In this document: piece after piece, positions 4,361 to 52,408 of the stretch
Position numbering within the stretch: the first letter of the stretch is position 1
Layout of the letters: every line of letters starts with the position of its first letter
IMG/VR virus record: IMGVR_UViG_3300042340_000379
Coordinates: 124,001 to 188,000 of that record
Length of the DNA: 64,000 bases
Strand: one strand, 5' to 3'
Notes under the pieces: generated by a model
The model's input: the letters and a program-made list of their open reading frames with translations, nothing else
The model's database searches: none
What the model was told of the DNA's origin: nothing
Position numbers and translations under genes: made by a program

Positions 4361-7128
4361 TGGCGATACCCAAATTCCTGTTTGATTAGACGAACCATTC
4401 GTTCATACGCTTTAGGATGTGCTGGAAGCCACTCCCCCGTTTTCAGATAAATAAGTTGGGTAAAGAACTCGGGCAACTCCCCAAACATAAGATGCTCCGT
4501 GCTTTTTGTGAGAGTTGGTTCATTATTCTCAATCCAACTTACCAACTCTAGAGGATTCTCTATCAACTTTGTTGTATCAAGGGGCGTGTATAAAAGAGTG
4601 CTCATTGCCTCAGTTAAAGGAAGTTCTGTAATCCGTTCGACTATTTCGGGACTACACCCAGAGACACTTCGAACAAATTCTCTATCATTTACACCCATTG
4701 TCTCAAGAGTAGATGAGGTAGCGAGCTGAAATGACAGAGGTGCAGTTGCACCGACAGCTTTTAGAACCGAGGTTACTGATTGATTGTCCTTTACAGCTTT
4801 AACCTCTTTTGCAACCTGGGCCGGAATCCCATAACTTTCAAGGAATGCTTCTAGTGGATTTTTTGATGTAGAAGTGTCATAAATAGGGTTTGGGAGAGAT
4901 GGGGAGATCGGGTTAGTTGTAATCGCGCCAACTAGATTTGAGGGCCACTCGCTAAAGTCAGCAATGTTAAAGTTCTCTTTATTCTGAATAGGAATTTTAC
5001 CTACATCAAGATAACCGTCTTTCTTAATAGAAGAGGCATGACAACTAACGTCAAAAGACGGAATCTGGTATTGCTCAGCAGCTGGGATAGACGGAGAGAT
5101 AGACGCATCCTCACCAAACGCTGAAAGACATTCAAGTGTGGATAAAAGAAGAGGAATAGGAGAGCCCTGGCGAGTTTCAGATAAGTTTAGCTCAGGCCAC
5201 TCTCCAAGATACCCACCTCTATTAAGAGTCTCATCTTCAGACTCTGACGGCTCGAGCTGGTCATAAGGAAGTGCAACCTCAAATGTAGTAGAAGCTAAGA
5301 AATCTTGAATCAAGCCATCGGGCAAAAAATCTAAAACTCCCTGAATATTTAGACCCCCTACCGTTTTGGCAAGGTCAAGTCCTAACGTAAGATTACCTCC
5401 GTCTACTTTTGCTGAGAGCGGGCCTAAGGTTACGCCAGAAATCTTCCCGTCTTCAGAGCTAATTCCAAGTTGAAGCTGGGAGGGAAGCTTCTTATTTAAC
5501 TCAGCTACCCCAAAGTTATAGATCGCCTCGGGATTGATAAAGACAGAATTACCGTCTAAAGAAAATACGCCCTTTAGTTCAGCAGGCAGATAGTTAGTAA
5601 GAATCTGAAGCGCGGCCTCTGGGTTTTCCACTAAGCCAACAGCCATTTGAATCTTGGCAATTAACTGCTCAACAGAAAACGGCTTTGAAGTAATCGTCTG
5701 GTCTCCATACTCTAGTTGAGCTAGCTGTTGCAGCTCAATTGGAAGAGTGCATCTAAGGGCATCAATCGCAATTGTTACTGGGTTACCAATTGTCGTTTCT
5801 ACAACTAGAGCTTTGCCCTCTGAGATAAAAAGACCAGGCGTGATTCTAAGCGCTGTTACTCTATCTGAACCATAAGTTTCAAACTTAAGGCTGGCTGGAA
5901 GTCTATTGTTAAGACCCTTAAGACACTGAACAAGAGTAGAAGGAATCTCGCTATAGGTATCGTTAGTAGTAATCTCAAATCCGCAGACGGTTAAGCGATT
6001 GGCAGTGTAAACAAAAGCTTCTTCGGCAAGAGCCTCATTGATTTTGGCTATGCCTTGACTAATGTCTAAAGTTAAATCTAAAGTTTTGAGATCTAAAGTA
6101 GTAACGCCAACCGTTGCGCGTTGATCCGACTTTCCAAATAAAAGATCCTTTATCTTTAGTGCTTTAGGAAGCCATTTGTTAAGCTTAGCCATCACATCCA
6201 CTACTCCACCCAGCCCAGCTTCCTGAGTTAGATTTTGGACTAATCCAGCCACAGGGTTGTCAGTTGTACCAGACCAGGCATCCGCCGCTAAGTTCTGAAG
6301 AAGACAGTAAACAACCTCTCGATATTTCTCATTTAGAATAGGAAGCTCAATCAACTGTTCTAAAACGTTAACCCATCCAGAATCAGCGGGGCTAGCCTGA
6401 ATCTCATTGACCTCGGTTGAGCCATCCAGCAGATTTATCCCTAGCGTGCCATCATAGATGTGGTTATAGTTTGTGACTGCTTCCCGAAGCGCGATCTCTC
6501 CCATTAAACGGTTAGTTGTTGTTGAAAACGCGCCCGTGTTTTGGGTAACCGTTTGATTCTCAGCAATGACCTCTGTACCTACAGAGACATGATAGTTAGT
6601 CGCCGTTTGGTTAGCGAAGAACATCTGGTTAGCAGGCATTTCAAGATTAAGTTGGGTGCCCTCATTATCTGGTTTAGGAATATAAGATATGAATGTTAAA
6701 CCATCCATACTCACCGCCGCTGGGGCTAGCCAAGGTGATGAGACTACAGGAAGATCAGTTCCAAGTTGAAGGGCCCCTTCACCCACTTCATCATTCCCGC
6801 CATGCTGAAAAATCTCGCCCAGGCGGACAGACATGCTTTGCCCCACCTCACCCGTTACAAGCCTAGCACCCGGCCTCGGTGGCGGCGGCAGGAAGCCTCC
6901 TCCATTAAATAGACCAAAGCCCGTTTGGTTAACTTGCCTTAGACCTGACGGGGGTTCAGATGCTAAATATTTGCCATAATAAATATGCTCAGGAGATTGA
7001 AGCGCTTGAGCCATGCGAATATGAAGAGGATATCCCTGGCCCACACGAGCCTGCATGGATCGATGCTTCTGATAGAAGCCCAAGTTCTGCCCGCCAACTG
7101 AGCGCTGGCTGTCGGAGATAGAAGTCAT
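4357..7128 (-). CDS. Large baseplate/central-spike-like protein
   Basis: 923 aa; N-terminal GGGFLPPPPRPGARLVTG resembles the gp5/gpV OB-fold P..G..V motif; next minus-strand gene after the hub gene. Confidence 0.45.
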   Translation of the reverse strand: MTSISDSQRSVGGQNLGFYQKHRSMQARVGQGYPLHIRMAQALQSPEHIYYGKYLASEPPSGLRQVNQTGFGLFNGGGFLPPPPRPGARLVTGEVGQSMSVRLGEIFQHGGNDEVGEGALQLGTDLPVVSSPWLAPAAVSMDGLTFISYIPKPDNEGTQLNLEMPANQMFFANQTATNYHVSVGTEVIAENQTVTQNTGAFSTTTNRLMGEIALREAVTNYNHIYDGTLGINLLDGSTEVNEIQASPADSGWVNVLEQLIELPILNEKYREVVYCLLQNLAADAWSGTTDNPVAGLVQNLTQEAGLGGVVDVMAKLNKWLPKALKIKDLLFGKSDQRATVGVTTLDLKTLDLTLDISQGIAKINEALAEEAFVYTANRLTVCGFEITTNDTYSEIPSTLVQCLKGLNNRLPASLKFETYGSDRVTALRITPGLFISEGKALVVETTIGNPVTIAIDALRCTLPIELQQLAQLEYGDQTITSKPFSVEQLIAKIQMAVGLVENPEAALQILTNYLPAELKGVFSLDGNSVFINPEAIYNFGVAELNKKLPSQLQLGISSEDGKISGVTLGPLSAKVDGGNLTLGLDLAKTVGGLNIQGVLDFLPDGLIQDFLASTTFEVALPYDQLEPSESEDETLNRGGYLGEWPELNLSETRQGSPIPLLLSTLECLSAFGEDASISPSIPAAEQYQIPSFDVSCHASSIKKDGYLDVGKIPIQNKENFNIADFSEWPSNLVGAITTNPISPSLPNPIYDTSTSKNPLEAFLESYGIPAQVAKEVKAVKDNQSVTSVLKAVGATAPLSFQLATSSTLETMGVNDREFVRSVSGCSPEIVERITELPLTEAMSTLLYTPLDTTKLIENPLELVSWIENNEPTLTKSTEHLMFGELPEFFTQLIYLKTGEWLPAHPKAYERMVRLIKQEFGYRQ

Positions 7129-8804: not shown

Positions 8805-9103
8805 AAGCATTACAAAAAATGGGCTACAGAGAAATGAAGGAAGGCCTCTGGGGAAAGCCTATTGGTCACTCAATTCTTATCTATAGAATAAAGGAAAAAA
8901 CTCTTTATCACCAAACAGTTGGAATAACAGATCGGCCTATTACTTGGGATAGCCAAAATATCGACTATGAAGTCGAGAACTTTCTAGAACTCATCCAAAA
9001 TACTGAGGCTGAGTTTGCTATGGGCAGCGGAATGTCCTATCACCAACCGCATGATTTGAGCTTTTTAACTCAAAGAGAAGTTATAGAAACACTACTTCAA
9101 TAA
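8801..9103 (+). CDS. Hypothetical protein
   Basis: 100 aa, coupled to the previous gene, converges on the hub gene. Confidence 0.6.
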   Translation: MKALQKMGYREMKEGLWGKPIGHSILIYRIKEKTLYHQTVGITDRPITWDSQNIDYEVENFLELIQNTEAEFAMGSGMSYHQPHDLSFLTQREVIETLLQ

Positions 9104-12100
9104 GGACTCAGTAATACAAGCTCACTAGTCCATCCCTGGCTACCTGCCGAGTTTAGCGTATGCCGTACACCCTCGATTCTCCAAATAGATCGAGGGTCTT
9201 GCGTGAACCCAGACTTTCGCCAGTGATTCTCGCCCCACTCTTCAGTTGTCGCTGCTGCGTTATCTCCCTCAGTATCCTTTTCTACAACCGTGGCTGTTTC
9301 TTTTTTAGTGGCAGAGCAAAAGATGTCCTCAGCGCTCTTCTTAAACTCAGCTTTTCTAGCCCTAATTTTATAGTCTTCATCAACTCGCTCATAGCCGTCA
9401 GGTGAAGGTTCAGATGAATAGTTCCCTGTAAGAGGGGCTGAAGTCTCAGCTCTAGATTCAATTCCCTGGCGCGTAACTTCTAATGCACTCAGGTAACTAG
9501 CACGAGTCGCGCCTTCATACTCAACAATAGACTGTCGCTCATCAATATAAGTCTGAAGAGTCTGAGAGTAAATAGGTGAGTTAATAGTTTGAACCAGCTC
9601 GCCAGGGGTTAACGAAGCATCACCTAACACAGTCATTGATGCCGTGCGCAACTCTTTAGCATAGAGACGAGCAACTGAAGCTGCAACCGCTGCCGCCTCT
9701 CCAATATTTTTGATCGTCTCGTCAACAATGTACATGTTGCGGCCACCAATTTCATGTCCTCGAAGAAACGCGGGCCTGGCTGACATGTGCATAATAATCG
9801 CGTCACCGGCCACACTCCCGTTAGGAGATTGGTTAGCAATAAAGAAGTTAGTCTTCATACCAAGAGAGGACAGCTCTTCTTTGAAGTTGATCGTCATCTG
9901 GTTGTAATCAACCTGGCCAAAGATGCGACTGTAGTCAAACGTTTGGGTAAACTCGCAACCTTCAGTCTCTAGCCTTTCTATAATGGACTCAAACGAGGGC
10001 TTAGGAATGCTACCAGAAACCTGCGGGGGAATAGTACGGTGGTAGTACGTCCTGTAAAATCGCTTAGGGTCAGCTAAGCCTGAAACATCATTTACTCTAG
10101 GGGTGTAATAGAACTGCCCGTCAAGATGGTTCATAAAAGTCTCAGTTGGGTAAGGTTCCTGAGCTGAGAGAACTCGAATAAACTCAATCGGAATCTGAGT
10201 TTCAATTGAGAAATCTTTGCTGATAATATCAACCGAGTAGGGTAATCGCCCGGTAAAGATGTTAAACCTCATTTCTGAGTCTAGGTCTAATAACTCTTTT
10301 GGGTTAGAAGTGCGAGCGCGGCAAGGGATAATATCTTTAGAAAATTCGTTTTTACATGTGTAGAAAAAGTCGGGGCGTTTTGCTTCTGTTAAAGGTCTAA
10401 CAAATGAATAACCTCCCGGCCCGCTAGAGCTTTCAGAAGGAGAACCTGTAAATGTGGGATCAGCACCTCCTAAATGGCTACCTAAAAAGTCATAAATTTG
10501 TTGAGGGGTTTTAGTTCCTTGACTAGGGTAACAAAAAGATCCATTGCTTCTTGGAATGCTGGCCCACTCACAAGCAATTTTATCTAGCACAGTAGGCCAG
10601 TCTTGTTTAAGAACCGCGTCATAAGCCCCTCTTTGTTTAAGAAGATCGATCGCAGCTTTGTCTTGATTCTCAGGACTAAAAGATGTCAAGCCCAATTTGC
10701 GAACTAGCCCATCCCAAGTTCTTATAAGAAATTGATATCGACCACTAGCAGATGACCGTAATCCAGTTCCTAAAATCTGGCGAGGGTGATCGCGATAGCC
10801 ATTATTAAATAAACGGCCAGTATACTGAACGTTGTAACCTCGATCACTTCCAGCTATTGTGCTAGTACCCTCTGCCCACGCGATCATATCTAACACCGCA
10901 CGAAGATTTGGGTCAGAAGTTCCTGACGCAGTTGTTGGTTGAGATGGCTGGGGAGTTGGTGTGGGTGCTGCTTGAAGTGCTTCTCCTCCAGACCCAAGTT
11001 CTACATTATAAACAGCAGGGTCTTGATGAAGCATCTGCAAAGAGACACCATCTGGAAAAGTGACTGCGGTGTAAAGGCCTCCACCACCCCGATCACTAAT
11101 TACTCCAGAAATCTTTTCTATAGGAACAGTTGAACGAATCTCTGTTCCTATAGAAGCTGCATAATCGATACCATAGTGCTTGCGTCCGTACCTCGCAGTT
11201 CTGCCAGGGTTTCTAGTCCAGTGTTCAGATGTAATTTGGACACTACCTAAAGGAACTCCATTTAAGGCAATACGGTTGGCATGTTCGTCTGTTACTCTAT
11301 TTCTGCTCGGGTCATAAGAGCGGGCGTATTGAAGATGGAGGTGAGGCCCTGTACCAACACCTGTTTGACCTGTGATTCCTAATAAAGCTCCAGTCCCAAC
11401 AGTCGCAGCACCCCCTCCACCTCTTAAAGCATTACCAGAACTACTGTTGTACTGAACATAAAAGCCCAAATCTTGAATAAAGCCCTTCTTAATAACTCGG
11501 CCATTTAGATTGCAGTCGTCAGTCTCACCTTGAATAGCAACATGGCCAATTCCCAACTGGGAAATCTTTAGGATCAAATCTGACCGCAAGACATTCTCGT
11601 TTCCTTTTGCAAATGCTTTTGCGAGTGTGCTAGCGTTCTTGTCATTACCGTATGATGGATCAAATGTTACTTCGCTATCAGACAGGTAACGAACACGATC
11701 TCGACACTGGATTGTTAATGAGATACCCTTTGGCGTTCCTATGGCTGCGATTGTGTCGATCACGCCAATATAGTTTCGTAAAAGAAGGGAGTTTTCTAGA
11801 TCCTCAGGAGCGACAGGTCGCATTGTCGGCAAATAGCCCATCCAAACGCAAATTTCATCCTCAGGGCCGAGTCTTGAAAGAACTTCCTCGTTGTCAATTT
11901 TCTTTTTGTAAAGAGGTAGTTCAGGTGGCATATCATGAACTGAAGTCAAGTTACATGACAATGAAATTGTTGCCGTCGAACTTGCAAAAAATCTCTGTTG
12001 ATAAACCGTCGCACTACTAATTACCCATTGGGAGGGCTCAGAATGAACGTTCGAGAATAAGATCTGAGTATGGTCAAGACTCGTGATCGCCCAAACCGGG

Positions 12101-12171
12101 ATAGCACCCTGACTTCTCATGTGACATTTATCCCCAAGGGTTGGATCGAATCTCGGTTCGGGAATACTCAT
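9097..12171 (-). CDS. Baseplate hub (gp27/gpD-like) tail-associated lysin with inserted M23 peptidase and lambda-type lysozyme domains
   Basis: Hub motifs GVIDTI...LTIQCRD and ASMTVLGDASLTPGE...WRIEGVRHTL...GWTSELVL. M23 motifs HYGID and GTGPHLH. Lambda lysozyme motifs LRAVLDMIAWAEGT, SASGRYQFL..TW, FSPENQD and EWASIP. Confidence 0.85.
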   Translation of the reverse strand: MSIPEPRFDPTLGDKCHMRSQGAIPVWAITSLDHTQILFSNVHSEPSQWVISSATVYQQRFFASSTATISLSCNLTSVHDMPPELPLYKKKIDNEEVLSRLGPEDEICVWMGYLPTMRPVAPEDLENSLLLRNYIGVIDTIAAIGTPKGISLTIQCRDRVRYLSDSEVTFDPSYGNDKNASTLAKAFAKGNENVLRSDLILKISQLGIGHVAIQGETDDCNLNGRVIKKGFIQDLGFYVQYNSSSGNALRGGGGAATVGTGALLGITGQTGVGTGPHLHLQYARSYDPSRNRVTDEHANRIALNGVPLGSVQITSEHWTRNPGRTARYGRKHYGIDYAASIGTEIRSTVPIEKISGVISDRGGGGLYTAVTFPDGVSLQMLHQDPAVYNVELGSGGEALQAAPTPTPQPSQPTTASGTSDPNLRAVLDMIAWAEGTSTIAGSDRGYNVQYTGRLFNNGYRDHPRQILGTGLRSSASGRYQFLIRTWDGLVRKLGLTSFSPENQDKAAIDLLKQRGAYDAVLKQDWPTVLDKIACEWASIPRSNGSFCYPSQGTKTPQQIYDFLGSHLGGADPTFTGSPSESSSGPGGYSFVRPLTEAKRPDFFYTCKNEFSKDIIPCRARTSNPKELLDLDSEMRFNIFTGRLPYSVDIISKDFSIETQIPIEFIRVLSAQEPYPTETFMNHLDGQFYYTPRVNDVSGLADPKRFYRTYYHRTIPPQVSGSIPKPSFESIIERLETEGCEFTQTFDYSRIFGQVDYNQMTINFKEELSSLGMKTNFFIANQSPNGSVAGDAIIMHMSARPAFLRGHEIGGRNMYIVDETIKNIGEAAAVAASVARLYAKELRTASMTVLGDASLTPGELVQTINSPIYSQTLQTYIDERQSIVEYEGATRASYLSALEVTRQGIESRAETSAPLTGNYSSEPSPDGYERVDEDYKIRARKAEFKKSAEDIFCSATKKETATVVEKDTEGDNAAATTEEWGENHWRKSGFTQDPRSIWRIEGVRHTLNSAGSQGWTSELVLLSPY

Positions 12172-12215
12172 CTAATAATCTATTCATAAATATACTTTGA
12201 CCTTAACTGCCTAAG

Positions 12216-12244
12216 TTGCAAGCTAAGTGCGCAAGGTATATAGT
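12216..12244 (+). promoter_or_regulatory. Sigma70-type promoter P1 of repeat RNA 1
   Basis: TTGCAA-17 bp-TATAGT. Confidence 0.65.
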
Positions 12245-12249
12245 AGAGA

Positions 12250-12360
12250 AGTCGCCTCCGCTCTCCTCTGCTCACCTCGACTCAGCTCAGCTCTTCTCCA
12301 CTCGACTCAACTCGGCGTTTTGCAAACCCTCAGTCCTAACCGGCTGGGGGTTTGGCCTTT
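12250..12360 (+). ncRNA. Putative small RNA 1: (CUC-NN)12 array plus 3' hairpin
   Basis: 12 perfect CTCNN pentamers at 12256-12315; stem CAAACCCTCAGTC/GGCTGGGGGTTTG at 12323-12354. Confidence 0.6.
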
Positions 12361-12403
12361 CTACCCCTTTATGTAAAGCAGGCTCGCCACCCAGCCAAGC
12401 AGC

Positions 12404-12433
12404 TTGCACCTAGTCGCGGCAGTGTGTTAGATT
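12404..12433 (+). promoter_or_regulatory. Sigma70-type promoter P2 of repeat RNA 2
   Basis: TTGCAC-18 bp-TAGATT with extended -10 TGn. Confidence 0.55.
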
Positions 12434-12437
12434 GTTC

Positions 12438-12576
12438 AAGTCAGCTTCGGTTGACAAAAACCGCCTCTTCTCGGCTCAACTCCACTCTGCTCTACTCGAC
12501 TCAACTCAACTCGACGTAGCCTGAAAATGGCTAAAGAAACCCCAGGAAGTTTAGGCCTCCTGGGGTTTCTACTTTG
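12438..12576 (+). ncRNA. Putative small RNA 2: 5' cUUCGg hairpin, (CUC-NN)10 array, 3' terminator-like hairpin
   Basis: GTCAGC-TTCG-GTTGAC at 12440-12455; 10 CTCNN units at 12465-12514; AGAAACCCCAGGA/TCCTGGGGTTTCT stem at 12535-12570. Confidence 0.65.
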
Positions 12577-12602
12577 TATCTACTCTGGGCTTTTAGGCCC
12601 AG

Positions 12603-12631
12603 TTGTCGTTCTGAAGATTACAAACTAGAAT
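12603..12631 (+). promoter_or_regulatory. Sigma70-type promoter P3 of repeat RNA 3
   Basis: TTGTCG-17 bp-TAGAAT. Confidence 0.6.
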
Positions 12632-12635
12632 TGAA

Positions 12636-12735
12636 AAGTGCTTAGGCACAGCGTCTCAACTCAACTCGGTTCATCTCAACTCGACTCCCCTCATCTCCAC
12701 TCAACGCAACTCGTCTGCCTGGGAAGGCTGTTAGA
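12636..12735 (+). ncRNA. Putative small RNA 3: 5' hairpin, (CUC-NN)12 array, short 3' hairpin
   Basis: GTGC-TTAG-GCAC at 12638-12649; 12 pentamers at 12655-12714 (two variant triplets, TTC and CGC); GCCT-GGGA-AGGC at 12717-12728. Confidence 0.6.
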
Positions 12736-12764
12736 GCATGCCCTAACCAAAACTCCACCCTATA

Positions 12765-13502
12765 CTAAAGAGCGAAAGTGTTTCCGTTTTGCAAAGCCCA
12801 AGTAGGCCGAGCATCATTAACAATAGTGGCCTGGTTATAAAATACAGAGTTTGTATTCTGACTGTCCGCAGGCGTAAAGGGATTACCAACAACAGTCCCG
12901 GCCCACACAGACGAGGAATCGACGTAACTGATCCCTTCAGCCAGGCCTTCCCAACGAACAGCAATTACTGAACGTCCGGCCATCGCGCCGATAGTCATAC
13001 TGTCAACTTTACAATAGACCAATCTATATTGGCCGACCGAGTGACGCCGACGACGGGAGTTATCATTTCCGTTGACTAGCAGTTCGCCAAGATTATTGTT
13101 CCGAAGATCAACGTTGTTGAGTGACCGTTCGTCAAGTTCAGGTGCAGAAAGATCAAAGGTGATTACCATCCTTGGGCTGCGACCAATGCGCATTTCACGA
13201 CGAATGTCATCAAAGCCAAAGGTAGACTCTAGAAGACGGGTGTCAATAAGACCCCGTTCTAAAACCCAACCGAACTGAAATTCACCATCAAGCATTCGGG
13301 GAATGCGTTGGTTAAATTCCATGTAAGGCTCAGTCGCGTTTCGGATAGTTAGCTGGATGCTGGTAAAGCGCCCAACTAAAAGCTGGTTGCCGGTCGCTTG
13401 GTCAATGACCCAGACATCGGCGTCAAAGCCCTGCATTGGATCCTTAATAGAATTATTAATCGCGGCCCCAGCAGGGGAAGAATTTGCTGTGAAAATTGCC
13501 AT
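12765..13502 (-). CDS. Tail tube protein
   Basis: 245 aa directly downstream of the sheath; beta-strand pattern of tube proteins (VGRFTSIQLTI, FGWVLERG, YRLVYCKVDS, VRWEGLAEG). Confidence 0.7.
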   Translation of the reverse strand: MAIFTANSSPAGAAINNSIKDPMQGFDADVWVIDQATGNQLLVGRFTSIQLTIRNATEPYMEFNQRIPRMLDGEFQFGWVLERGLIDTRLLESTFGFDDIRREMRIGRSPRMVITFDLSAPELDERSLNNVDLRNNNLGELLVNGNDNSRRRRHSVGQYRLVYCKVDSMTIGAMAGRSVIAVRWEGLAEGISYVDSSSVWAGTVVGNPFTPADSQNTNSVFYNQATIVNDARPTWALQNGNTFAL

Positions 13503-13542: not shown

Positions 13543-16500
13543 TTACTGGGTTTGCAGGCTCAGGGAATCTGCAATTTCTCGGGTAACGCTGACCCTGATA
13601 AAGTCAGCCGGGTATACTGGCGTGTAGAGCAACGCGATGTTTAGAATGCCCTGAGAGATAGTGGTTGGTGTGTTGTTACTTTCGTTACAAATCGTGTTTC
13701 GGAAGCTCGAGATTCGCCCTTCACGGGTCAGGCTTTGAAGATAGGCGTCAACCGCAACTGCTACCTGGGCTCTTAAAGAAGTGGTGTTCCTATTTGAGCG
13801 AACCCACACTAGATTAAGATACAGGTCGTGAAGAATTTGGTCAGCCATCCGTCGCACAGAGACGTACCGATCACTACTGTTAGAAGTAGTTGACAAACCA
13901 TTTAGAAACTTATAGACTCCAAGGCCCGCGTCGTAGAAGAGAACTTCAGTCCGAGCGCGAGTGACGGCATCCAGATAGGTTGTGTTTGAAGGAGTGTCAA
14001 CAGAAACGACGCCATTTGGAACCATTCCCTCGCCAGCAGCAGCGGGAGATATTTCAGGAGGGTTAGCTGCCAACAAACCTACATAAAAGCCAGCCCCAGG
14101 AGTATTGTTAAAACCGCTAACTCCAGCCATTGAGGTGTGCCCACCAACCAAAACAATTCGAGGATTGTTCTGGGCAGAGGCTAAGCTCAAAGCTTGAGTC
14201 CCAGAAAGATTACGGGGGGCTTGAATAACACCCGTTCTTAGACCAGTAGAAACATTAGCCCGATTGACCTGGCCAATAATCTCTTCGGTCACGCCCGAGA
14301 AGTTACGGTCGCCCGCATCATACCCAGCGGCATATAAGATTGAAATATCTTGACCTTCTAGCTCCTGAACAGCCTGGCGAAGAATAGCAGCTCGATCGGC
14401 AGCAGGCAAACTTGCAACAACAGTGTCTTGGCCTTCACTCAAGTAAATATTTTGGAGATAAGAATCACCAAAAGCCGCTTGAGCATAAAGAGGAAGAGAG
14501 AACGAGCTGGTAGATTGGTTTGCGGTATTAAAGACAGGAATGCGATCGCCATAAGACGGCGCAAGTCGAACAGGAACTTTATTTAGTTCTAGTTCAGTCA
14601 ACTCTTTACCATCAACAGCGGGTAGATAGTAACAACGAACCAGTCGGCTATTAGCCGAGGCGTTAAACAAACCGTCAGTTTCAACATCCCGAGTCGAAAG
14701 CGCCATCGTTTCCGAACCAGGAACATTTTGGTAAGAAGAACTATCTTCATCTAAAACAAAGAGAGTAAACTGACCGTCCCGTCCGGGGGTGACACTAACC
14801 TTAAGCTTATTGCCGTAAGCACCTTCTGATAAGGCTACAACTCGAAGCAGTGGGTCAGAATCAATAGAGTAGAAATCTTGATAAGCAGCGCTGGAACCAT
14901 CAATCGCCCCACTAAACCTTAGATCCGCTCCATACTTAGAGTTGGAATCGGAAATGTTGCTAGAGTTAAACAAAAGGTCATCAGCAGTAACACCAGAAGA
15001 CACCCCCTTAACTTCGCGAGTTAGAGTAGCCCGAATGCGATTTGCGTCAGTGCCTGTATACCCGGTGGCAAGACTCAGAGTTGGGGGATTCAAGTTAGCC
15101 GAAATAATAGGCTCTCTAAGAAGACCCATCATCATCGCGTCAAGTTCAATCGCTTCTTTTAGTTCAGTGAGAATTTGGGAAGCTGTCATACCAACCGAGA
15201 AGTCTTGCTCGCCAGCAGCAGAACCTAAAGCTACGGAAGCATAGGCAACAGGAACGTTAAACGTACCCCCCTTAAGAAACGCAATCTTATTAGAGGTCGA
15301 AATGCCTGGTAGGTCAACTTGAATGCCAGACGAGGGAGCAAAGATAACTCCATCTTCACGCTCAAACAGAATGCGATTGTCAAAATTGTTAGCTTGAACA
15401 GCTTCAGTTGAAACAAGAAATGCGTCAACAAGAGCGTTGCGGTCGTCTACCTCAAAAGCAGTCTGAATGAATTTATACTCTAGAGGATCAGAAACTGTGC
15501 CGACAGTAGTTGCGGCAACAGGGCCAGAAAGAGTACCAGAAATAGTAGCCGATGAAACAGAGGCAGGAGTTTGAGTGCCAACTGTAAATTTTGACCCGTT
15601 GGAAAAGTTAATTTCAAAGCCGGGGTCAAGTCGGTAAGGAACAGATGCTACAGAAAGAGAAACAGCTCCGTTTATCGCGTTTGAAGAAACAGTAACGCTA
15701 GCCGAAGGATTTTTTACGTACTCTGGGAGACCGCCAGATCTTGCCCTAAATGTGGAAGAGAAGATGTAGAGATTCTTAGAAGTTTCGTAGAGAGAAACCG
15801 AAGCGTTAGTCAGAACGGTCGCGATCTGCCCTTTAACTAAAAACCGAACTCGGTTTGGGTTAGAAGGGTCATCAGCAGCAACTGACATTACCATCAAGGG
15901 AGTGCTAGAAGTGCTGTTAAAAACAACCGCTGAACCAGAGTACAAAAGCCGACCGGGCTTTAAGTTAGCAACAAAAGATTGGTTGCTTTCTAAAGTGCGA
16001 TCAGCGTACATCCATTGAATCTGGTTCTCAACAGAACCAGAAACTGGAATATAAGTTGCAGGGGCGCTAACCGTCGCGGTTGATGAGATGATTTGCTCAA
16101 CAGATGGAATAGCGCCTTGGGGAATGATAACTCCAACAGAGGTTGAGCTTAAAACGCCTTTTAGAGAAACCGGGTTATTTGAGGGGTCAGCGTTTTCAGT
16201 TAGCTTAAAACTTGCGTTAGAAAAGTAGAGATAGCTGTCTTTTGCTAGACTAGTGCGAAGACTTGCAATCTCAAGAGTTTTAATCTGGCGAGCAGAATAA
16301 GTCGCGGCAGGTAGAGTGCCTGGATTTTTAGTGACGGTTGCAGTCGTTGCAGAAGCAATGGTAATTTGCATACCATTAGTTAAAACGTAAACTTGTCCAA
16401 CTACCGGAACACCGTCAACGTTAGTTAGAGTAGAAAGAGTTAAAACATCATTTAGAGCTAACGTTACGCTAGAAGCGAGAGTAAAGCCAATTGTGTTTGA

Positions 16501-17070
16501 CCGGCCAGTCAAAGCCGTCGAAACAACAAAACCAGGATCACCTTTCAAATACTCTTCAGCGACGTACTCAAAAAGACCCAGCCCATTGTAATCAACACTA
16601 CTAGGAAGAGCGCTAGTATCTCGAACGTTAAGTAAGCCAGCTGCCCGAACAGTCTCAAAGCTCTGGCCAACGTATCGAACATTCAGCTTTAGACCAGTAG
16701 TTTGAACTTGATTGCCAGCATTAAACTGCTGGATGTTGCCAATAAAACCAACTTGAGCTTGGTTAGTAGGAAGAACGTTGGCAAACTTTAGATCAAGAGT
16801 AGCTGCGGTAGCCCGAGGGGTAGCGCGAGAAATGACAATGTCAGTTGCACCTTGAAGTAGAACCTGACGAACAGCAACCGCACCAGGAGAGTTGTCATCT
16901 CCATAGAGATAGGCTGCATCTTGCCGGTTAGTAACTCGGACTGCACCACGAGGGCCTCGACGAAAAATACCGGCAATGCCCACCCGGTTGCGGTAGTTTG
17001 TATTGAATGGGATAGGCCCGACGAGAGTTTCCTGAAAACTAACGTTAGGAAAAGATAGTTGTTGGTTCAT
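13543..17070 (-). CDS. Contractile tail sheath protein, enlarged by a long insertion
   Basis: N-terminal FPNVSFQE..GIAGIFRRGP; ALSEGAYGNKLKVSV; C-terminal YVSVRR...AYLQSL...ICNESNNT...GILNIALLYTPVYPADFIRV. Confidence 0.9.
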   Translation of the reverse strand: MNQQLSFPNVSFQETLVGPIPFNTNYRNRVGIAGIFRRGPRGAVRVTNRQDAAYLYGDDNSPGAVAVRQVLLQGATDIVISRATPRATAATLDLKFANVLPTNQAQVGFIGNIQQFNAGNQVQTTGLKLNVRYVGQSFETVRAAGLLNVRDTSALPSSVDYNGLGLFEYVAEEYLKGDPGFVVSTALTGRSNTIGFTLASSVTLALNDVLTLSTLTNVDGVPVVGQVYVLTNGMQITIASATTATVTKNPGTLPAATYSARQIKTLEIASLRTSLAKDSYLYFSNASFKLTENADPSNNPVSLKGVLSSTSVGVIIPQGAIPSVEQIISSTATVSAPATYIPVSGSVENQIQWMYADRTLESNQSFVANLKPGRLLYSGSAVVFNSTSSTPLMVMSVAADDPSNPNRVRFLVKGQIATVLTNASVSLYETSKNLYIFSSTFRARSGGLPEYVKNPSASVTVSSNAINGAVSLSVASVPYRLDPGFEINFSNGSKFTVGTQTPASVSSATISGTLSGPVAATTVGTVSDPLEYKFIQTAFEVDDRNALVDAFLVSTEAVQANNFDNRILFEREDGVIFAPSSGIQVDLPGISTSNKIAFLKGGTFNVPVAYASVALGSAAGEQDFSVGMTASQILTELKEAIELDAMMMGLLREPIISANLNPPTLSLATGYTGTDANRIRATLTREVKGVSSGVTADDLLFNSSNISDSNSKYGADLRFSGAIDGSSAAYQDFYSIDSDPLLRVVALSEGAYGNKLKVSVTPGRDGQFTLFVLDEDSSSYQNVPGSETMALSTRDVETDGLFNASANSRLVRCYYLPAVDGKELTELELNKVPVRLAPSYGDRIPVFNTANQSTSSFSLPLYAQAAFGDSYLQNIYLSEGQDTVVASLPAADRAAILRQAVQELEGQDISILYAAGYDAGDRNFSGVTEEIIGQVNRANVSTGLRTGVIQAPRNLSGTQALSLASAQNNPRIVLVGGHTSMAGVSGFNNTPGAGFYVGLLAANPPEISPAAAGEGMVPNGVVSVDTPSNTTYLDAVTRARTEVLFYDAGLGVYKFLNGLSTTSNSSDRYVSVRRMADQILHDLYLNLVWVRSNRNTTSLRAQVAVAVDAYLQSLTREGRISSFRNTICNESNNTPTTISQGILNIALLYTPVYPADFIRVSVTREIADSLSLQTQ

Positions 17071-17122
17071 ATTACTTTTCTAGCTTTGTTTGTTTTATCA
17101 AAATGAAGACGGTCAAGGGTGG

Positions 17123-18370
17123 TCAATCGCTAGCGAGAATTACGCCAATAGCTCTTCCTCTATTAATTTCTGTTCCTTCAGAAGGTCTAATTAAACTGAC
17201 ACTAAAAAATCTGTCGGCTGGAAGGGAAAGCTCTCCAGCTGTCTTAAACGTAATTACTTGTGTCTCTTCCCCAACATCAAACTCGAGAGAATCCAAAGGA
17301 TATTCTAAATCCTCAAAATGAATAGCTAAAGCGGGAAGGGGGCCAGTGCCCGTAACCTGCCAGTTAACTTCGCTAATAATATCCAGGTTTCCGATTCTTG
17401 TAACAGTAAACGTAAATTGAGTCTGCTCTGTCAAGGCAACTTCACTAGTTGTCTGAGAAGTAATGCTCAATGTTGGAGGGGTATATCCTGGATACTGTAT
17501 TACAGTATATAGATCTACAGCATCTCGGACTGGGCTATTTGTCCAAGGCTCTTCTCCCTCTTCAGGTTCAGGAGGAACAAAGTAGTTAACTAAGTTTTCA
17601 AAGTCAACCTCAGTTGACTCATCTTCAATTAGAAGAGTTTTGACTGTCTCGACTATAAATAGACCTTGGTTTGAACGAGCGAGGTTTGTCTCATAAATAT
17701 CAAATTCAATTACTGTTTCAGCCCTGTGAAACACTAAGTTCTCTGGATTGGTTTGACTAATTGTTGATGTAGTTGGATAGTTTGTATAAAGAATAGATGG
17801 GTTGCGAATACCGTAAGGCTGAAAATGACCTATATCTCGGACTATGTACCGAATCATAGTCATTAAGTCTCGAAGCATTTCTTCAGAAGGGACAACATAA
17901 ATGATTGCTTCCCCTGTTACTTCAGCTGGTTCGTCTTGATTAGCAGGCTCGACTAATTCAAAACGCTGGCCAAAAGGCCCGTATTCTTCACTCTCTTGAA
18001 GAGAATAGGAGACAGCAATAGGAACATCAAAACTTGCCTCAATAATAGAGGCTTGAATCGTAAGCCTAAATCTCGTGCGATCAGAATATTCGCCAGGGTC
18101 AGGCCGACCCATTGTGTAATGCTCATTTTCTAGAGAGGCTGTCGATGTGTATCCACCTGTTGGAAACACGGATAGCGTTAAGCCAGGCTCTGGTAATTCA
18201 AGACCCGAGTAAGTTCTAAATTTCTGGACAGCAACTCTAACTGGTGGCTGACCAACCGGGGTACCCACTTCAAAAATGGGCAGCTCTTGCATGAGAGGAT
18301 GCTTCTGAAGTGCAAGCGCTACTGCTAGTACAACTTGCCGGTCAGTGGCTGAATAAATCCTATCTGCCAT
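17123..18370 (-). CDS. Putative neck/tail-terminator protein with C-terminal Calx-beta-like Ig domain
   Basis: C-terminal FTFTVTRIGNL...VNW...LEFDVGEETQVIT...FFSVSL..PS...AIGVI fits Calx-beta; lies upstream of the sheath. Confidence 0.55.
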   Translation of the reverse strand: MADRIYSATDRQVVLAVALALQKHPLMQELPIFEVGTPVGQPPVRVAVQKFRTYSGLELPEPGLTLSVFPTGGYTSTASLENEHYTMGRPDPGEYSDRTRFRLTIQASIIEASFDVPIAVSYSLQESEEYGPFGQRFELVEPANQDEPAEVTGEAIIYVVPSEEMLRDLMTMIRYIVRDIGHFQPYGIRNPSILYTNYPTTSTISQTNPENLVFHRAETVIEFDIYETNLARSNQGLFIVETVKTLLIEDESTEVDFENLVNYFVPPEPEEGEEPWTNSPVRDAVDLYTVIQYPGYTPPTLSITSQTTSEVALTEQTQFTFTVTRIGNLDIISEVNWQVTGTGPLPALAIHFEDLEYPLDSLEFDVGEETQVITFKTAGELSLPADRFFSVSLIRPSEGTEINRGRAIGVILASD

Positions 18371-19962
18371 TAGTAAAAGTAGAAAGGATCATGCATAGCT
18401 TCAAACTGGCGGGTAGCATCATTAACATTGTCTAGAAGTTTGGAACGACTAAAGCCAACCATCTTAGGTGTTCCAGCTAAATCAAGCCCAGTAGTTGTAG
18501 TCACAGTTTCAGCAGCTCTTGCATAAGTCGCCCGTACTCTTAAAGAGCGAGGCTTATTTGAGAATTTGCTATAAGGGCCATTATAATCACCCAATGAAAT
18601 TTCTATATCAGCCGGAACCTGAAGAATATCAAGAACAAGAATAACCTGAGGATTCATTACCGACCAAGCAAATAGCTCTAGAACAGCTACAGGGTCAGCG
18701 GCTGTTGAAGGGTCGTTGCGAATAATCGCGGAAACCATAAAGTTTTCGTCTCTACTAGCCGTGATTGTATTGAGAAGACTTAAAGCAAACTGTTGATAGC
18801 GCTCAGCGTCTAGAGTTTCTTGTTGAGCACCCGTTACTCGGTTGAATGGCACAGTAATTAGAGTTTCATCAGTAACTGGGAACCTTAGTTGGTACTGATC
18901 AGTTGTGGAAGCATTAACAAGAGAGTTCTTTCTGATATACAGAATTGTTGGCAGGAACTCATCCTGTGTTGTGTCCTGAGCCTCACCAATTTTACTAGCT
19001 ACAAAATATGTTGCGCGGGTTAAAAGTAGAACACTATTAAGTGGGTACTTTGACATGTTTTCAACATCTAGTCCCCACATAAAGGGAAGGTCAGTTGAAT
19101 CATAATCTGCGCCAGCTTGAAACTTAAACTGGATTGTAATTAGGGTGGCTGTTCTATCAACCACCACCGTTCTAGGACTCAGTTCAATGTAGTGAGTGTT
19201 TTGTACGCCAGAAAGAACAGGGGAAGCTAAAAGGTTCCCACCATCTACAGTAAGAGAAGCTTCATTAATTTTGTCGGCTATGTCACTAACAATCTCTGCT
19301 GTAGAGAGGTTTCCTGGAGTGTAGACAATTGGAGTGAGGTCTGACAGCGTTCCAGGGAATGTTATGTAAACAGAAAGAGGAATCTCAAGTTGGTGAGTTA
19401 GACGTTGGAAATAAATGCGGCCAGTATTGACTTCATCTTCAGTAGCAGCACTAGTTGAGCCAGATGGCGCATTAGCCGGAATCTCAAGTAAAAACTTTAG
19501 CTCGCTAGTTGCTCTATCTTTAAGAGCTTCAGCATGAGCAAGTTGCTCTTTTAATGTCGCAAACTGAGAGATTAATTCAGCGGCTGCGAAGCAAGCAGAT
19601 ATGCGCCGGATACCATCTGCAAATTTGTTCTGGTACTCAGAAACAAGCTCTCCAGTAGCCGGGGAATAGATAAACTTTTTAACGTCATTAATACCGGCAT
19701 AACGCCAGTTGCCTTCAGAGTCTTTAGCAGAACCAAGAATTAAGCCAATCTCAGGGTCAGCATGGTCTGTAATGGCATAATAAATTTGTTTTACAGGAGT
19801 GCTCTTTAACAACACTGAAAAACGCCTCACCATTTGAGCTAAAGAATTCAACTCTGGTGAAGCGTTTATAAGTTGCGCGTCTGTTGCGCTCTCGATGGCA
19901 GTCTCGAGAGCAGCAAAAGTCGGGTTGTTATACGAAAAGCGATCGCCAAACGTAAACGTCAT
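18370..19962 (-). CDS. Putative head-tail connector/neck protein
   Basis: 530 aa between capsid and sheath genes; helical N-terminal part followed by beta-rich domains. Confidence 0.45.
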   Translation of the reverse strand: MTFTFGDRFSYNNPTFAALETAIESATDAQLINASPELNSLAQMVRRFSVLLKSTPVKQIYYAITDHADPEIGLILGSAKDSEGNWRYAGINDVKKFIYSPATGELVSEYQNKFADGIRRISACFAAAELISQFATLKEQLAHAEALKDRATSELKFLLEIPANAPSGSTSAATEDEVNTGRIYFQRLTHQLEIPLSVYITFPGTLSDLTPIVYTPGNLSTAEIVSDIADKINEASLTVDGGNLLASPVLSGVQNTHYIELSPRTVVVDRTATLITIQFKFQAGADYDSTDLPFMWGLDVENMSKYPLNSVLLLTRATYFVASKIGEAQDTTQDEFLPTILYIRKNSLVNASTTDQYQLRFPVTDETLITVPFNRVTGAQQETLDAERYQQFALSLLNTITASRDENFMVSAIIRNDPSTAADPVAVLELFAWSVMNPQVILVLDILQVPADIEISLGDYNGPYSKFSNKPRSLRVRATYARAAETVTTTTGLDLAGTPKMVGFSRSKLLDNVNDATRQFEAMHDPFYFY

Positions 19963-32771: not shown

Positions 32772-35700
32772 ATGGATCCCCTCTTCCCAGAATTAGACCC
32801 GGCTTTAATTGATAACCAGAACTCCGAAGTTCGAGAGCAAATCAGACGGTTAGAAAAATCAACCCCTGAAGATATTGCTCGCCAAGAGTTAACCACCCCT
32901 GACCTTAACTCCATAGGGATTAGTCGGGGGTTTAGACTTCACTACGGAGAAGTATCCGATCGCCCTGGCACACGCTACAACATGCTAGGGCAAAAGATCT
33001 ACGAACCACCGACTCTAGCAATGGAGTCTCAAGTTGGATTTTATGAGCCGGTCAGCGTTCGCGCCAACGTTTCTCTAGACCAATCCCTACAAGTTAGAGC
33101 TGTTAATGCAATCGACTCTATTAACTATGGACGTTCTGTATTAACTGGGCAGCAGCGAACTGTAACGAGTGGCTTAAACACTATGTTTGGGCGGCAGTTT
33201 AGAAGTTTAATGTATGACCAGCAAGTAAGAGCTGCCGGTCTTATGGGGTTAAGCCGAGAAGACACCCGCGCTCTTTTAGGAGAACCTGCAGTTAGAGAAG
33301 GGCTTTATCAAGACGCTGGCTTTAGAACACCCAGCCTTGAATCGATTATGGAGAATATGGGCACCGGGATGCCTAGCGCTGAACGCATCAGTGACATAAA
33401 TAGAATGGGCTTCTACGCCGATCGCTATGCAGATCCTGAGAGCGTTCAGAAACTTTATCGAGAAGTCAACCAACTAAAAAATGCCCTTGGCGATGGAATC
33501 AAATCTGTAGAAAAGCGCTATGCATACCGAAAAGTTAACGGCATGTACGAAAAAGTCCTTGTTGGCTTAAAGGTTGGAGTAAGAAATTACAATGACCTTT
33601 TTGACGGAATGGGTCTCTACAGCGGAACCAGCGCTCCTGCTGTTGAAAGAGAAACTGCTTTTAACTTTACTGTTGACTCTAAGGGCCAAGTAATTGAACT
33701 TAATACTAATAGGGTAATTAGTGGTTCGCTTATGGCCCTTGGGCCGTCCAGCATTTCTACTATTGTGGGTTCCTCTCTTATTGGAGGAGAAGGTCGCCGC
33801 CAAAGTAGTTCGGCTACAGCGCTGGGCCTTTTAGCTACTTACGCCAGGTCATCAGAGCTTGAAGCTCGGCACGGTGTTGTAGATGGTGTGTTTAACACCA
33901 TGATCGCACAAGGAGAATATGGTGCTCTTGGAAGAGTCTTTGCAGAAGCTCTTGTGTCTCGTAATGAGAAGTATGTCGCCAGCCGGGGCTTAAAATTTGG
34001 CGAAGTTGCTGGCCAAATGCTCAGCTCCGTCGGCCATAAAGATTTTAAGAAAGGTATTCATGAACTAATTGAGAGTATTTCCTATCGCGGTCTTGAGTAC
34101 TATTCCAGTCTCCATACTGTATTTAAGGAAAGCTTTGATGAAAACACAGCCCGCATGGAGCTGTTTAGAAACCGGCAGTCTCTTCTTACAGCTGCCTTTG
34201 ACCCTCTTCTAAATTACACGGGTGGGGAAGGCTCCAGATTTGATGGGTTAATTGACACCACAATGAAGCGGGTAGTTGACCTAATTCAATCTGATAGCAG
34301 TACCCAGCGGTTAAAAATTGCAGGTCAGGATGTAGACATTTCTCTATTTGATGACTTAAAAGTTGCGGCTTTAAACATGAGCCCAACAGGTCGAAGTGCT
34401 TACGACTTAAGAAAGAGTCAAGTCAGCCGCTCGATTCTGCAACTTATGATGTCGCCATTCCTAATGCCGCATGAGTCAGGCTACTCAGGGTCTCAGTCTT
34501 CCTCCCGCCTTGGATTGTTTGCCATGTCGGAAACTAGGGGTCAGCGGGGTATGTACGAGCTTTTTGCCATAAGCCCGTCAAAGCATACCCACGGAATGAA
34601 GAGCACAAAGCCTGGTGAGTACTACAAACCTATTGGCTCACAGAGCGCTAAAAGCTCTGTTATGAAATATATTGGCGGATTTTATAAATTTGACGACACT
34701 GCTGCTAAAGTAGCTGAGTTTTATGAGACAAAGACTTTATTTGCAGGTATGCCCTCATTAAAGCGTGCCAAGCTTGATGACATTCAGATTCACATGCAAA
34801 AAGCTGGATATAAAAGTTCTCGAGAGATTATCGAGAAGTATCGAGCAGAGATGCAGCTAAAAGAGGATAAAGATATTGAAGTTCTACTCATGCCATTTAG
34901 AAAGCCTGAGCAGATCTCCCAACGTCTTAAAAACTTGGTAGGGGGTAGACCCATGCTAGAAATAGCAACGGGTCTTCGCCGCGCAGTGATGAGCCAGAGT
35001 GGGCAGCAACTTCGAAGTTATTTCTCTGGAGGAGACTATGGCGTTTCCCTTGATGTGGGGAAAGCGTTAAGCGGCAACATTCCTGCCGCGCTAAATGACA
35101 TCCAGTATCAGCAGATGGAGCAAGAGAGATCGCGCATTATTGCTGAACTGGGTCTAGATGAAAAGAAAATAACGCCGAGACAGCAATCAGAGTTATCTCG
35201 TTTGCTAACCTCTCGTATGCGGGAAATTGAAACTCAGTTTAATGAAGGCGGCGGGTACATTCAAGGTAAAGCCGCTCGCTTAACCATGGTGGGCATGGGC
35301 GTGAACATGCTCTCTGACTTTATGCTCGTCAACCAGGAGTACGTCAACAACACAGCTTTTGGCTATCTACATCATTCCAAGTTTCGAGTTTCAGCTACTC
35401 AAAACGTTCGGTATGAAGGAGTGGGGCGAGTTACAGAAGCTGACCCTTATTTTGACTGGAAGACTAATCGCCTGGCGGAGGTGTTTAAAGCTGGTACCTC
35501 TATCTATCTATCACCTACCCCTCTAAAAAATGAGAGGGCAATGGAGATTCTTAAAAAGACCGCGCAAAGCATGAGGTCTGAGTTTCTTGCTCGAGGCATT
35601 AGCAAACGAGAGAGTGACGCGCAAGTAAGGCGCACGCTTCAAAGCAACTTCAAATTTTTAGAGAGCGTAGACATCAAAGATGGAGAAGTCACCAACGCAA

Positions 35701-51144: not shown

Positions 51145-52200
51145 TTAGGCTCCCACTGTTACAGCATGTCGGTTTAAGTTATCCAATGCCATAATGTTAG
51201 CAAAATCAGGGTGCTGAGGAACATAAATTCCAGCATTTGCGGGAAGCCGACCTTTAAACAAGTAAGCACAGCCACCAAACAACATACGACCGGAAGTAGG
51301 AACAAACTGATTAAAGTTGTTTCGAATCTCACCTTGAACTAACTCAAAGAAGTTAGCAAGAGCATGCTTGGTAAGATCGGTGAAGTCGATCATCTCATTG
51401 TTGTCAGCAGGGTAAAAATAGGTAGAGCGCCCATTCTCTCCAGGAATAGGATTAGCCAGCGCAGTCATGACATCATCAAGGTCTAGTTGACCTCCAACAC
51501 GTTGGATCATCAAAGGATTGATTTTAATCATAGAAGCCAAAGCCTTACCACCAGCTAAAGTTGATCCTTTAACTCCATCATAGGAACTACGAAGTAGGAT
51601 GTTGTTGCGAGGGCCGATCGCAGTAATATCCAGTGTGCCGCCGCCAATGTCAGCGCCGATCACATTTCCGACAGAAGGAAGGTGGTTAAGTTCACGAGCC
51701 ATAATAATCGCGTCAACCCCTTCGGGCCGAGGAGCCTCAGGATAAATGCGAACTTTCATGTCAAATGTACCCTTGTCAGACGTATAGGTGTACTCAAAAG
51801 TATCAGTGAGTTTTTCGCGAAGGAACTCGCCTACAGTTCGGCCATCGGTTCGGCGCTTACTTGGGTCAGGTAGACTCCATTGAAGTACAACCTCGTAATT
51901 GGTTTTGTTTCCAATGGGGCCAAGAGTAGAAAGGAGAAAAGGAATAAAGTACTTGGGATCTAGCTTATCGCGGTTAACCAATCCACTCGCGGCGGCACCA
52001 TACTCAGAAGCGCGATCGCCAATATGAAAGCGACCAAAATCCCCCTCAACAATAATAGAGTCGCTGCCAGGGTCAATTGCGTCACCACCAGGAAAGATGG
52101 GAGCAACAATAGATTTTAGATAAATCGGCTGGGTGTGAATCCCATGACTAATAGCCAGAGTAGAAAAGTTGCCAACATCAATAGCGTGCTGAGTTTTCAT
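51145..52200 (-). CDS. parM: ParM/StbA-family actin-like ATPase
   Basis: Phosphate-1 AIDVGNFST, connect PEG, phosphate-2 ADIGGGTLD, adenosine LFGGCA, terminal P.FAN. Confidence 0.9.
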   Translation of the reverse strand: MKTQHAIDVGNFSTLAISHGIHTQPIYLKSIVAPIFPGGDAIDPGSDSIIVEGDFGRFHIGDRASEYGAAASGLVNRDKLDPKYFIPFLLSTLGPIGNKTNYEVVLQWSLPDPSKRRTDGRTVGEFLREKLTDTFEYTYTSDKGTFDMKVRIYPEAPRPEGVDAIIMARELNHLPSVGNVIGADIGGGTLDITAIGPRNNILLRSSYDGVKGSTLAGGKALASMIKINPLMIQRVGGQLDLDDVMTALANPIPGENGRSTYFYPADNNEMIDFTDLTKHALANFFELVQGEIRNNFNQFVPTSGRMLFGGCAYLFKGRLPANAGIYVPQHPDFANIMALDNLNRHAVTVGA

Positions 52201-52263
52201 ACAAAAATTTGGGTAATAAGTGTTCAACAGACTCCCTTAGTATAAGCTAAATTTTTGGGTTGT

Positions 52264-52408
52264 GGGCCATAAAAGGCCCGACGCGGGCCCTAATCGGACT
52301 TTCTAGGGCCCTAAAGGGCCCAACGCGGGACGTGAAGGGCCCTTCACGGGACATAGACGGCCCGACGCGGGCCCTAAAGAGACCAAAAAGGGCCCGTGAA
52401 GGGCCCTA
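52264..52408. repeat. parC-like array 1: about 14 GGGCCC/GGGAC-type boxes at 10-11 bp spacing, upstream of parM
   Basis: gggccataaaa-ggcccgacgc-gggccctaatc-ggactttcta-gggccctaaa-gggcccaacgc-gggacgtgaa-gggcccttcac... Confidence 0.75.

Follow-up and report, generated by a model that had tools for sequence, protein, structure and literature searches.

Candidate CUC-type VIPR guide RNAs without a nearby vipr gene in a freshwater jumbo cyanophage

A gap between two tail genes of a freshwater jumbo cyanophage holds three parallel units built of CTC-NN five-base repeats. What could these repeats encode? We examined a window of 64,000 nucleotides, positions 124,001-188,000 of a 207,855-bp contig (IMG/VR record IMGVR_UViG_3300042340_000379). 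The original prediction proposed that the units are a CUC-triplet variant of the VIPR RNAs, which combine a fixed triplet with variable NN, and that no RAMP partner lies in the window. Our analysis supports this central idea. The units are most likely VIPR RNAs (vrRNAs) of a non-canonical CUC type, although their transcription and their function as guides are inferred. The coordinates of the features are collected in the table.

Features of the repeat cassette and its surroundings (positions in the 64-kb window)
Feature	Position	Strand	Description	Score
Lysin/hub-like gene	9097-12171	-	Flanking gene, 1024 aa, with lysozyme and M23-like stretches; context only	
Intergenic gap	12172-12764		593 bp	
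Unit 1 promoter-like site	12216-12244	+	TTGCAA, 17 nt, TATAGT	9 of 12 matches
Unit 1 repeat tract	12256-12315	+	12 exact CTC-NN pentamers; NN = CG TC TG AC GA AG AG TT CA GA AA GG	
Unit 1 3' tail	12314-12362	+	13-bp G+C-rich hairpin (12323-12354) followed by UUUGGCCUUUCU; terminator-like	-23.7 kcal/mol, z -3.7
Unit 2 promoter-like site	12404-12433	+	TTGCAC, 18 nt, TAGATT	8 of 12 matches, below the threshold of the scan
Unit 2 5' hairpin	12440-12455	+	GUCAGC-UUCG-GUUGAC, cUUCGg tetraloop, at the predicted transcript start	-7.6 kcal/mol, z -2.2
Unit 2 repeat tract	12465-12514	+	10 exact CTC-NN pentamers; NN = TT GG AA CA TG TA GA AA AA GA	
Unit 2 3' tail	12517-12570	+	Small hairpin (12517-12533) plus long G+C-rich hairpin (12535-12570), then a U-rich stretch	-30.5 kcal/mol, z -5.6
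Additional terminator-like hairpin	12585-12602	+	Between units 2 and 3; its T-rich tail (TTGTCGTTCT) overlaps the -35 of unit 3	-11.7 kcal/mol, z -3.0
Unit 3 promoter-like site	12603-12631	+	TTGTCG, 17 nt, TAGAAT	9 of 12 matches
Unit 3 5' hairpin	12638-12649	+	GUGC-UUAG-GCAC	-5.7 kcal/mol, z -1.9
Unit 3 repeat tract	12655-12714	+	12 pentamers, 10 with CTC, unit 4 TTC, unit 11 CGC; NN = AA AA GG AT AA GA CC AT CA AA AA GT	
Unit 3 3' tail	12715-12764	+	Only weak hairpins and no U-tract; end of the transcript undefined, may run antisense into the tube gene	z +0.3
Tail-tube-like gene	12765-13502	-	Flanking gene, 245 aa, phrog_34837; context only	
Tail sheath gene	13543-17070		Next to the tube-like gene	

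The gap is located inside the late structural module. The tube-like gene follows the sheath gene, and major head and portal genes lie further along the same strand. The three repeat tracts keep an exact period of 5. The NN strings given in the original prediction are correct, but its description of the CTC as fixed is slightly overstated for unit 3. Positions 1-3 of the pentamers carry 1.8-2.0 bits of information, and positions 4-5 carry 0.1-0.3 bits. No other triplet forms a period-5 run of four or more units in the 64 kb, apart from a 4-unit ACT run (12494-12511). It consists of a frame-shifted read of unit 2's own tract.

A promoter-like -35/-10 pair precedes each tract. The promoter scan found 3 sites against 1.1 +/- 1.1 in shuffles, and one of the 3 is on the minus strand at 11961. 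The scan called the sites of units 1 and 3. Units 1 and 2 end in strong hairpins followed by U-rich stretches, while the tail of unit 3 folds no better than shuffles. The repeat tracts themselves are predicted to be largely unpaired. Rfam and tRNA scans of the window gave nothing, and no DNA similarity to isolate phages was found. Coding ORFs through the tracts were rejected, since a period of 5 is not a codon multiple. Likewise, the gap shows period 5 only and no direct repeats of the CRISPR kind, so we rejected a CRISPR array.

We then asked whether the tracts could be microsatellites. A scan of viral contigs for nine CTCNN units returned more than 120 stretches. Most of them are slippage repeats with one or two distinct NN. 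In contrast, the tracts of the window have 9, 7 and 6 distinct NN (2.2-3.1 bits). Slippage is therefore rejected as the origin of the tracts, although one in-register unit insertion in a variant strain shows that unit-level change does occur. A handful of other contigs had equally diverse tracts, often several in a row.

These contigs led us to Vipr. An all-against-all comparison of their ORFs showed one shared protein of ~200 aa next to the arrays. A profile of five of these proteins hits PDB 36pp, "SUSP1 Vipr protein", at E 1.4e-10. The match covers the C-terminal half, including the G-loop GxGxxRPR. The proteins fall in phrog_4652 and have no Pfam family. VIPR was described only in 2026, and its code has been worked out for GGY repeats. 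In this system a RAMP protein, Vipr, polymerises on RNAs made of 9-16 GGY-NN pentamers, and the NN pair with DNA while every third target base is skipped (10.64898/2026.04.26.720920; 10.64898/2026.04.26.720927).

We fetched 80 viral relatives of the protein. They show period-5 arrays beside the gene, essentially all on its coding strand. The fixed triplet differs from locus to locus: GGC (68 arrays), CTC (21), CGC (18), GAC (12), CAC (8), with smaller numbers of other triplets, GTC among them. On a tree of 82 Viprs the triplet is clustered, with 30 changes against a shuffled mean of 46 and 0 of 200 shuffles as low. CTC occupies one clade plus two or three separate rows. Within this Vipr family the residue just before the G-loop covaries with the triplet: L for CTC, F for GGC and GAC, G for CGC. 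It aligns next to a residue that lines the pyrimidine pocket in SUSP1 (10.64898/2026.04.26.720927). However, shared ancestry confounds this observation.

High-entropy CTC-NN arrays of the same build flank the Vipr protein in 13 unrelated viral and bacterial loci. In these loci, 43 of 45 arrays are on the vipr coding strand. They have 6-25 units, carry 1.8 bits at positions 1-3 and 0.04 bits at positions 4-5, and 26 of 43 end in CTCAA-C. Many have their own -10 box and a hairpin terminator, and one contig has at least eleven such units in tandem. Canonical GGC arrays occupy the same positions on the same strand in close relatives, and the published RNA sense is GGY-NN. The RNA sense here is therefore inferred to be CUC-NN and not GAG-NN.

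The units of the window have the same build. Each would give an RNA of roughly 110-130 nt, antisense to the late tail operon, with a short leader, 10-12 pentamers, a junction CUCAA-CUCGN-C and a 3' hairpin (strong in units 1 and 2). By homology with the solved SUSP1 and P. fulva systems, we infer that one Vipr protomer binds each pentamer, sequesters the fixed triplet and presents the NN dinucleotides. These might pair with double-stranded DNA of the form (NNx)n and silence transcription of a competing mobile element. None of these functions is shown here, and the 1-nt-skip rule has been shown only for GGY-type systems. We hold this reading of the units with fairly good confidence.

The likely host agrees with it. 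The only relatives of the sheath protein among isolate phages are Microcystis and Microcoleus phages, at about 29% identity. The cyanobacterial HIP1 octamer occurs 13 times in the window against 0.66 expected, and the CTC-type Vipr loci are also HIP1-rich. Among 46 bacterial genomes with a relative of this Vipr, all three cyanobacteria (Allocoleopsis, Microcoleus and Pantanalinema) have CTC arrays. CTC also occurs in a Massilia, a Flavobacteriaceae and a Lichenihabitans genome. The DNA of the phage comes from lake-water metagenomes.

Where is the protein? Six-frame hmmsearch and hhalign detected no Vipr in the window. We extended the readable part of the contig to 114,835-206,426 with exact-protein look-ups, up to a 4386-aa gene that blocked the way upstream. 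No Vipr or further arrays appeared in these 92 kb, so that no vipr lies within 21 kb on one side of the cassette or 70 kb on the other. The contig is not among the best 80 viral relatives of the CUC-clade Vipr, and no contig of its length appears among the best 120 of 5,564 database relatives, which is not conclusive. In every Vipr locus examined, the arrays lie within about 2 kb of the gene. By architecture, then, this cassette is solo. The Vipr it needs is either encoded in the unread 56% of the genome or supplied in trans. The trans source would be CUC-type VIPR elements of the cyanobacterial host, which exist in Allocoleopsis, Microcoleus and Pantanalinema genomes and in HIP1-rich viral contigs, some from lake metagenomes.

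The cassette looks like an insertion that is maintained. Viral contigs gave only distant relatives of the tube protein without the cassette, and metagenome contigs gave 5 distant relatives. Phages whose tube protein is 55-66% identical lack the arrays, and in the closest one the tube gene is followed after 68 bp by the next ORF. On the other hand, two independent Logan assemblies carry an identical cassette. One lake run holds a strain about 91% identical in the neighbouring gene. In that strain, 12166-12270 is replaced by 110 other letters, an extra TTCAT unit sits after 12305, and the contig continues differently at the start of unit 2's tract. The stretch 12271-12459 (189 bases) has only 5 substitutions and 8 gaps. 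This strain gives the only comparative hint that guide content changes while the scaffold stays, and the hint rests on contig-level data.

We searched for targets of the NN strings. Local scans with 0-3 skipped bases and mismatches allowed, over about 5 Mb of fetched sequence including the readable phage genome and all Vipr loci, did not exceed shuffled-NN controls. Exact 1-nt-skip patterns of unit 1 gave no hit, either for units 1-10 and 3-12 in viral contigs or for units 1-11 in 185,579 genomes and in the metagenome collection. Likewise, all 10 units of unit 2 gave no hit in viral contigs. These large searches were exact, while the published work accepts 80% or more NN match. Units 1-10 of unit 3 hit one gene present in two 24%-GC contigs without HIP1. 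The hit is in frame with the skipped base at the wobble position, but units 11-12 do not match. Given the A-rich pattern, it is probably chance. Finally, 42 CUC guides from other loci showed no targeting of this phage above the null.

Other explanations were considered. The RNAs could be real CUC vrRNAs that soak up Vipr made by a resident prophage or other element, or steer it to harmless sites, and so protect the infecting phage. The lack of a vipr near the cassette, the failure to find a target and the three strongly promoted units in a row would agree with such a sponge or redirector. Moreover, CUC-array elements occur in the same lake runs, and satellites use solo vrRNAs to redirect a helper's VIPR (10.64898/2026.10.15.759431). 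However, unit 1 has no exact site in the species' genomes searched, and the NN strings are as diverse as those of vipr-linked guides. Nothing distinguishes this reading from the guide reading on sequence alone, and we consider it unlikely. A decaying relic, picked up by recombination and no longer used because the phage and its hosts lack a matching Vipr, seems more doubtful still. The two degenerate triplets and the missing stable 3' hairpin of unit 3 favour it, as do the absence of targets and of a Vipr in the sequence and lists examined. Nevertheless, units 1 and 2 have 22 of 22 perfect triplets with intact promoters and terminators, the cassette is identical across independent assemblies, and the stretch retained in the divergent strain also counts against decay.

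The least likely alternative places the element on the minus strand. The late tube-to-hub mRNA would carry three (GAG-NN)n tracts that bind a TRAP-like or other oligomeric RNA-binding protein and control hub translation, or the repeats would act as DNA, for example as protein-binding iterons. Both flanking genes are on the minus strand, so that strand is surely transcribed late, and about eleven GAG/UAG triplets spaced by 2-3 nt are probably what TRAP binds. Conversely, the orientation of the arrays in the Vipr loci argues against it. The promoter-like sites and the hairpin-plus-U ends are on the plus strand, and the closest phage relatives manage without the insert. The TRAP/GAG reading raised in the original prediction is thus not supported, although no TRAP-like gene was searched for.

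A more speculative reading is that the phage carries no Vipr of its own and brings three CUC-type guide RNAs that load onto Vipr made by prophages or other elements already resident in its host. The silencing machinery of the resident would be turned against a third party, or disarmed. This possibility is tentative and, in our view, rather unlikely. If true, it would extend the "guns for hire" logic beyond enterobacterial satellites, and it would show that orthogonal fixed-triplet dialects (CUC, GGC, CGC, GAC) decide who can borrow whose Vipr. More generally, the cassette and the Vipr loci it led to show an all-pyrimidine fixed triplet within one Vipr family that also uses GGC, CGC, GAC, CAC and GTC. 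Mutually orthogonal VIPR systems may therefore exist. This matters for understanding cross-talk between competing elements and for building multiplexed programmable repressors.

Compared with the TRAP binding sites of Bacillus trp leader RNAs, which appear to have about eleven trinucleotide repeats with 2-nt spacers, the minus strand here reads GAG-NN by complementarity. The strand, the promoters and the family context all point to the CUC strand, and no TRAP seems to be known in cyanobacteria or was seen here, without a dedicated search. In Class 1 CRISPR, as is inferred for the present units, a RAMP protein polymerises along a guide RNA and flips out bases at a fixed period. However, the period here is 5 with three bases hidden, rather than 6 with one, and there is no repeat-spacer array, no cas genes and no adaptation module.

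The type II VIPR vrRNAs of Escherichia phage SUSP1 and the P. fulva prophage (10.64898/2026.04.26.720920; structures in 10.64898/2026.04.26.720927) are RNA genes of about 100 nt with a structured 3' end. Like the present units, they have 9-16 tandem pentamers with a fixed triplet and hypervariable NN and several units in a row in an intergenic region, and the partner family is homologous. The fixed triplet here is CUC in 32 of 34 units, and the two guanines read by SUSP1 Vipr are absent. Only the pyrimidine at the third position is shared with GGY (YNNGG), and the listed alternatives NNNGG, YNNNG and NNNNG do not apply either. The 3' end is a plain hairpin in units 1 and 2, and no pseudoknot tail is evident, although pseudoknots were not examined. 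Units 2 and 3 have a 5' hairpin, there are no adjacent vipr or vap genes, and the host is a cyanobacterium. The cassette is inferred to work like a VIPR vrRNA set, but it fails the literal GGY definition and lacks an adjacent vipr, so we do not file it as a canonical member.

Solo vrRNAs are known from F5 satellites and from VIPR-null SUSP1-like phages (10.64898/2026.10.15.759431). They too have no vipr in the neighbourhood and are carried by a mobile element that would depend on a Vipr made elsewhere. Those are GGY-type, sit where vipr-vap1 was deleted and have predicted targets (vipr, other vrRNAs, satellites, host REP elements). The present cassette looks like an insertion in the tail module of a jumbo cyanophage, with no known target and with part of the genome unread. 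It would extend solo guide RNAs from E. coli satellites and phages to a freshwater jumbo cyanophage, in hosts that include bloom-forming and mat-forming cyanobacteria. The claim of novelty in the original prediction needs tempering, because non-canonical arrays (GAC/NN, CAC/NN, WGT/NN, TGH/NN) next to Vipr-like folds, found by entropy periodicity, were reported in October 2026 (10.64898/2026.10.21.760802). CUC is not named in the text of that work that we could consult, the figure listing all patterns excepted, and neither CUC nor CTC occurs in the main text of the discovery paper, its supplement not having been searched for them. We recovered GAC and CAC arrays in the same Vipr family as the CTC arrays. 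The arrays reported in that work are vipr-linked, whereas the CUC cassette described here is not.

The window carries a 21-nt tandem repeat (5.5 copies, consensus GGGCCCTAAACGGCCCGACGC) right next to an ORF that matches a phage 'partition protein' family (phrog_691). This repeat may be a centromere-like site, which would fit a plasmid-prophage lifestyle. Besides these elements, very large ORFs of 3360 and 1829 aa lie in the window. Just upstream of it, we observed a 4386-aa gene with an SNase domain and a 1087-aa gene with intein and LAGLIDADG domains. The cyanobacterial HIP1 palindrome GCGATCGC occurs 13 times in the window, against 0.66 expected from base composition. Likewise, the CTC-type Vipr loci have 7-16 copies per 8 kb.

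Coordinates of additional features in the window and in other loci
Sequence	Position	Feature
window	52264-52378	21-nt tandem repeat
window	51145-52227	ORF matching phrog_691
window	14542, 19939, 19989, 25372, 25510, 27272, 52012, 56256, 61322, 62900, 63051, 63453, 63783	HIP1 palindrome
window	32772-42854, 55493-60982	very large ORFs
L291 (just upstream of the window)	15364-18627 and 19871-end	1087-aa and 4386-aa genes
window	12166-12459	region that differs in the strain of run X5
L130 (IMGVR_UViG_3300042561_001378)	5196-6668	tandem CUC vrRNA units
L122 (IMGVR_UViG_3300005669_000002)	5211-5263	high-entropy CTCNN tract
L287 (24%-GC viral contig)	2272-2300	match to units 1-10 of unit 3
L288 (24%-GC viral contig)	5211-5239	match to units 1-10 of unit 3

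A ~91%-identical strain, seen in the lake run X5, has the start of the cassette replaced (110 letters in place of 105). It also presents one extra in-register pentamer (TTCAT) after 12305 and a different continuation at unit 2's tract. In the L122 locus, another high-entropy CTCNN tract ends in CTCAA-C, with no Vipr in the 9.9 kb fetched. This locus shares a 33%-identical protein with window 53975-54370. It may be a second solo CUC vrRNA in a related phage.

Under the 1-nt-skip rule, units 1-10 of unit 3 match, in frame, a 310-aa ORF in L287 and L288. However, we judged this match to be chance because of the composition, the host mismatch, and the mismatch at units 11-12. (CTCTG)n microsatellites of 9-17 units were found in sample 3300045988 (L010, L014, L021, L022, L032, and about 30 other loci). 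They sit in a conserved frame (agattgttccgtcaa...ctctg / aggattgtgctgtgg...), often at contig ends. It consists of an unrelated, recurrent, length-variable repeat in one group of viral contigs.

In L130, at least eleven CUC vrRNA units stand in tandem at about 160-nt spacing, downstream of vipr and a second shared ORF. Each has a CATAAT or TATAAT box and a near-identical terminator hairpin. The promoter sequence of this element also appears as loose ends in a lake run that holds a relative of the phage. Finally, the Vipr loci (L130-L209 and L293-L338) were compared within one Vipr family (5,564 clusters, all named 'hypothetical protein'). The fixed triplet of the flanking arrays differs by lineage: GGC, CGC, CTC, GAC, CAC, GTC, and AGT. 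Nevertheless, the third base is nearly always a pyrimidine. The residue before the G-loop GIGRFRPR covaries with the triplet. It is L in the CTC type, F in the GGC and GAC types, and G in the CGC type.
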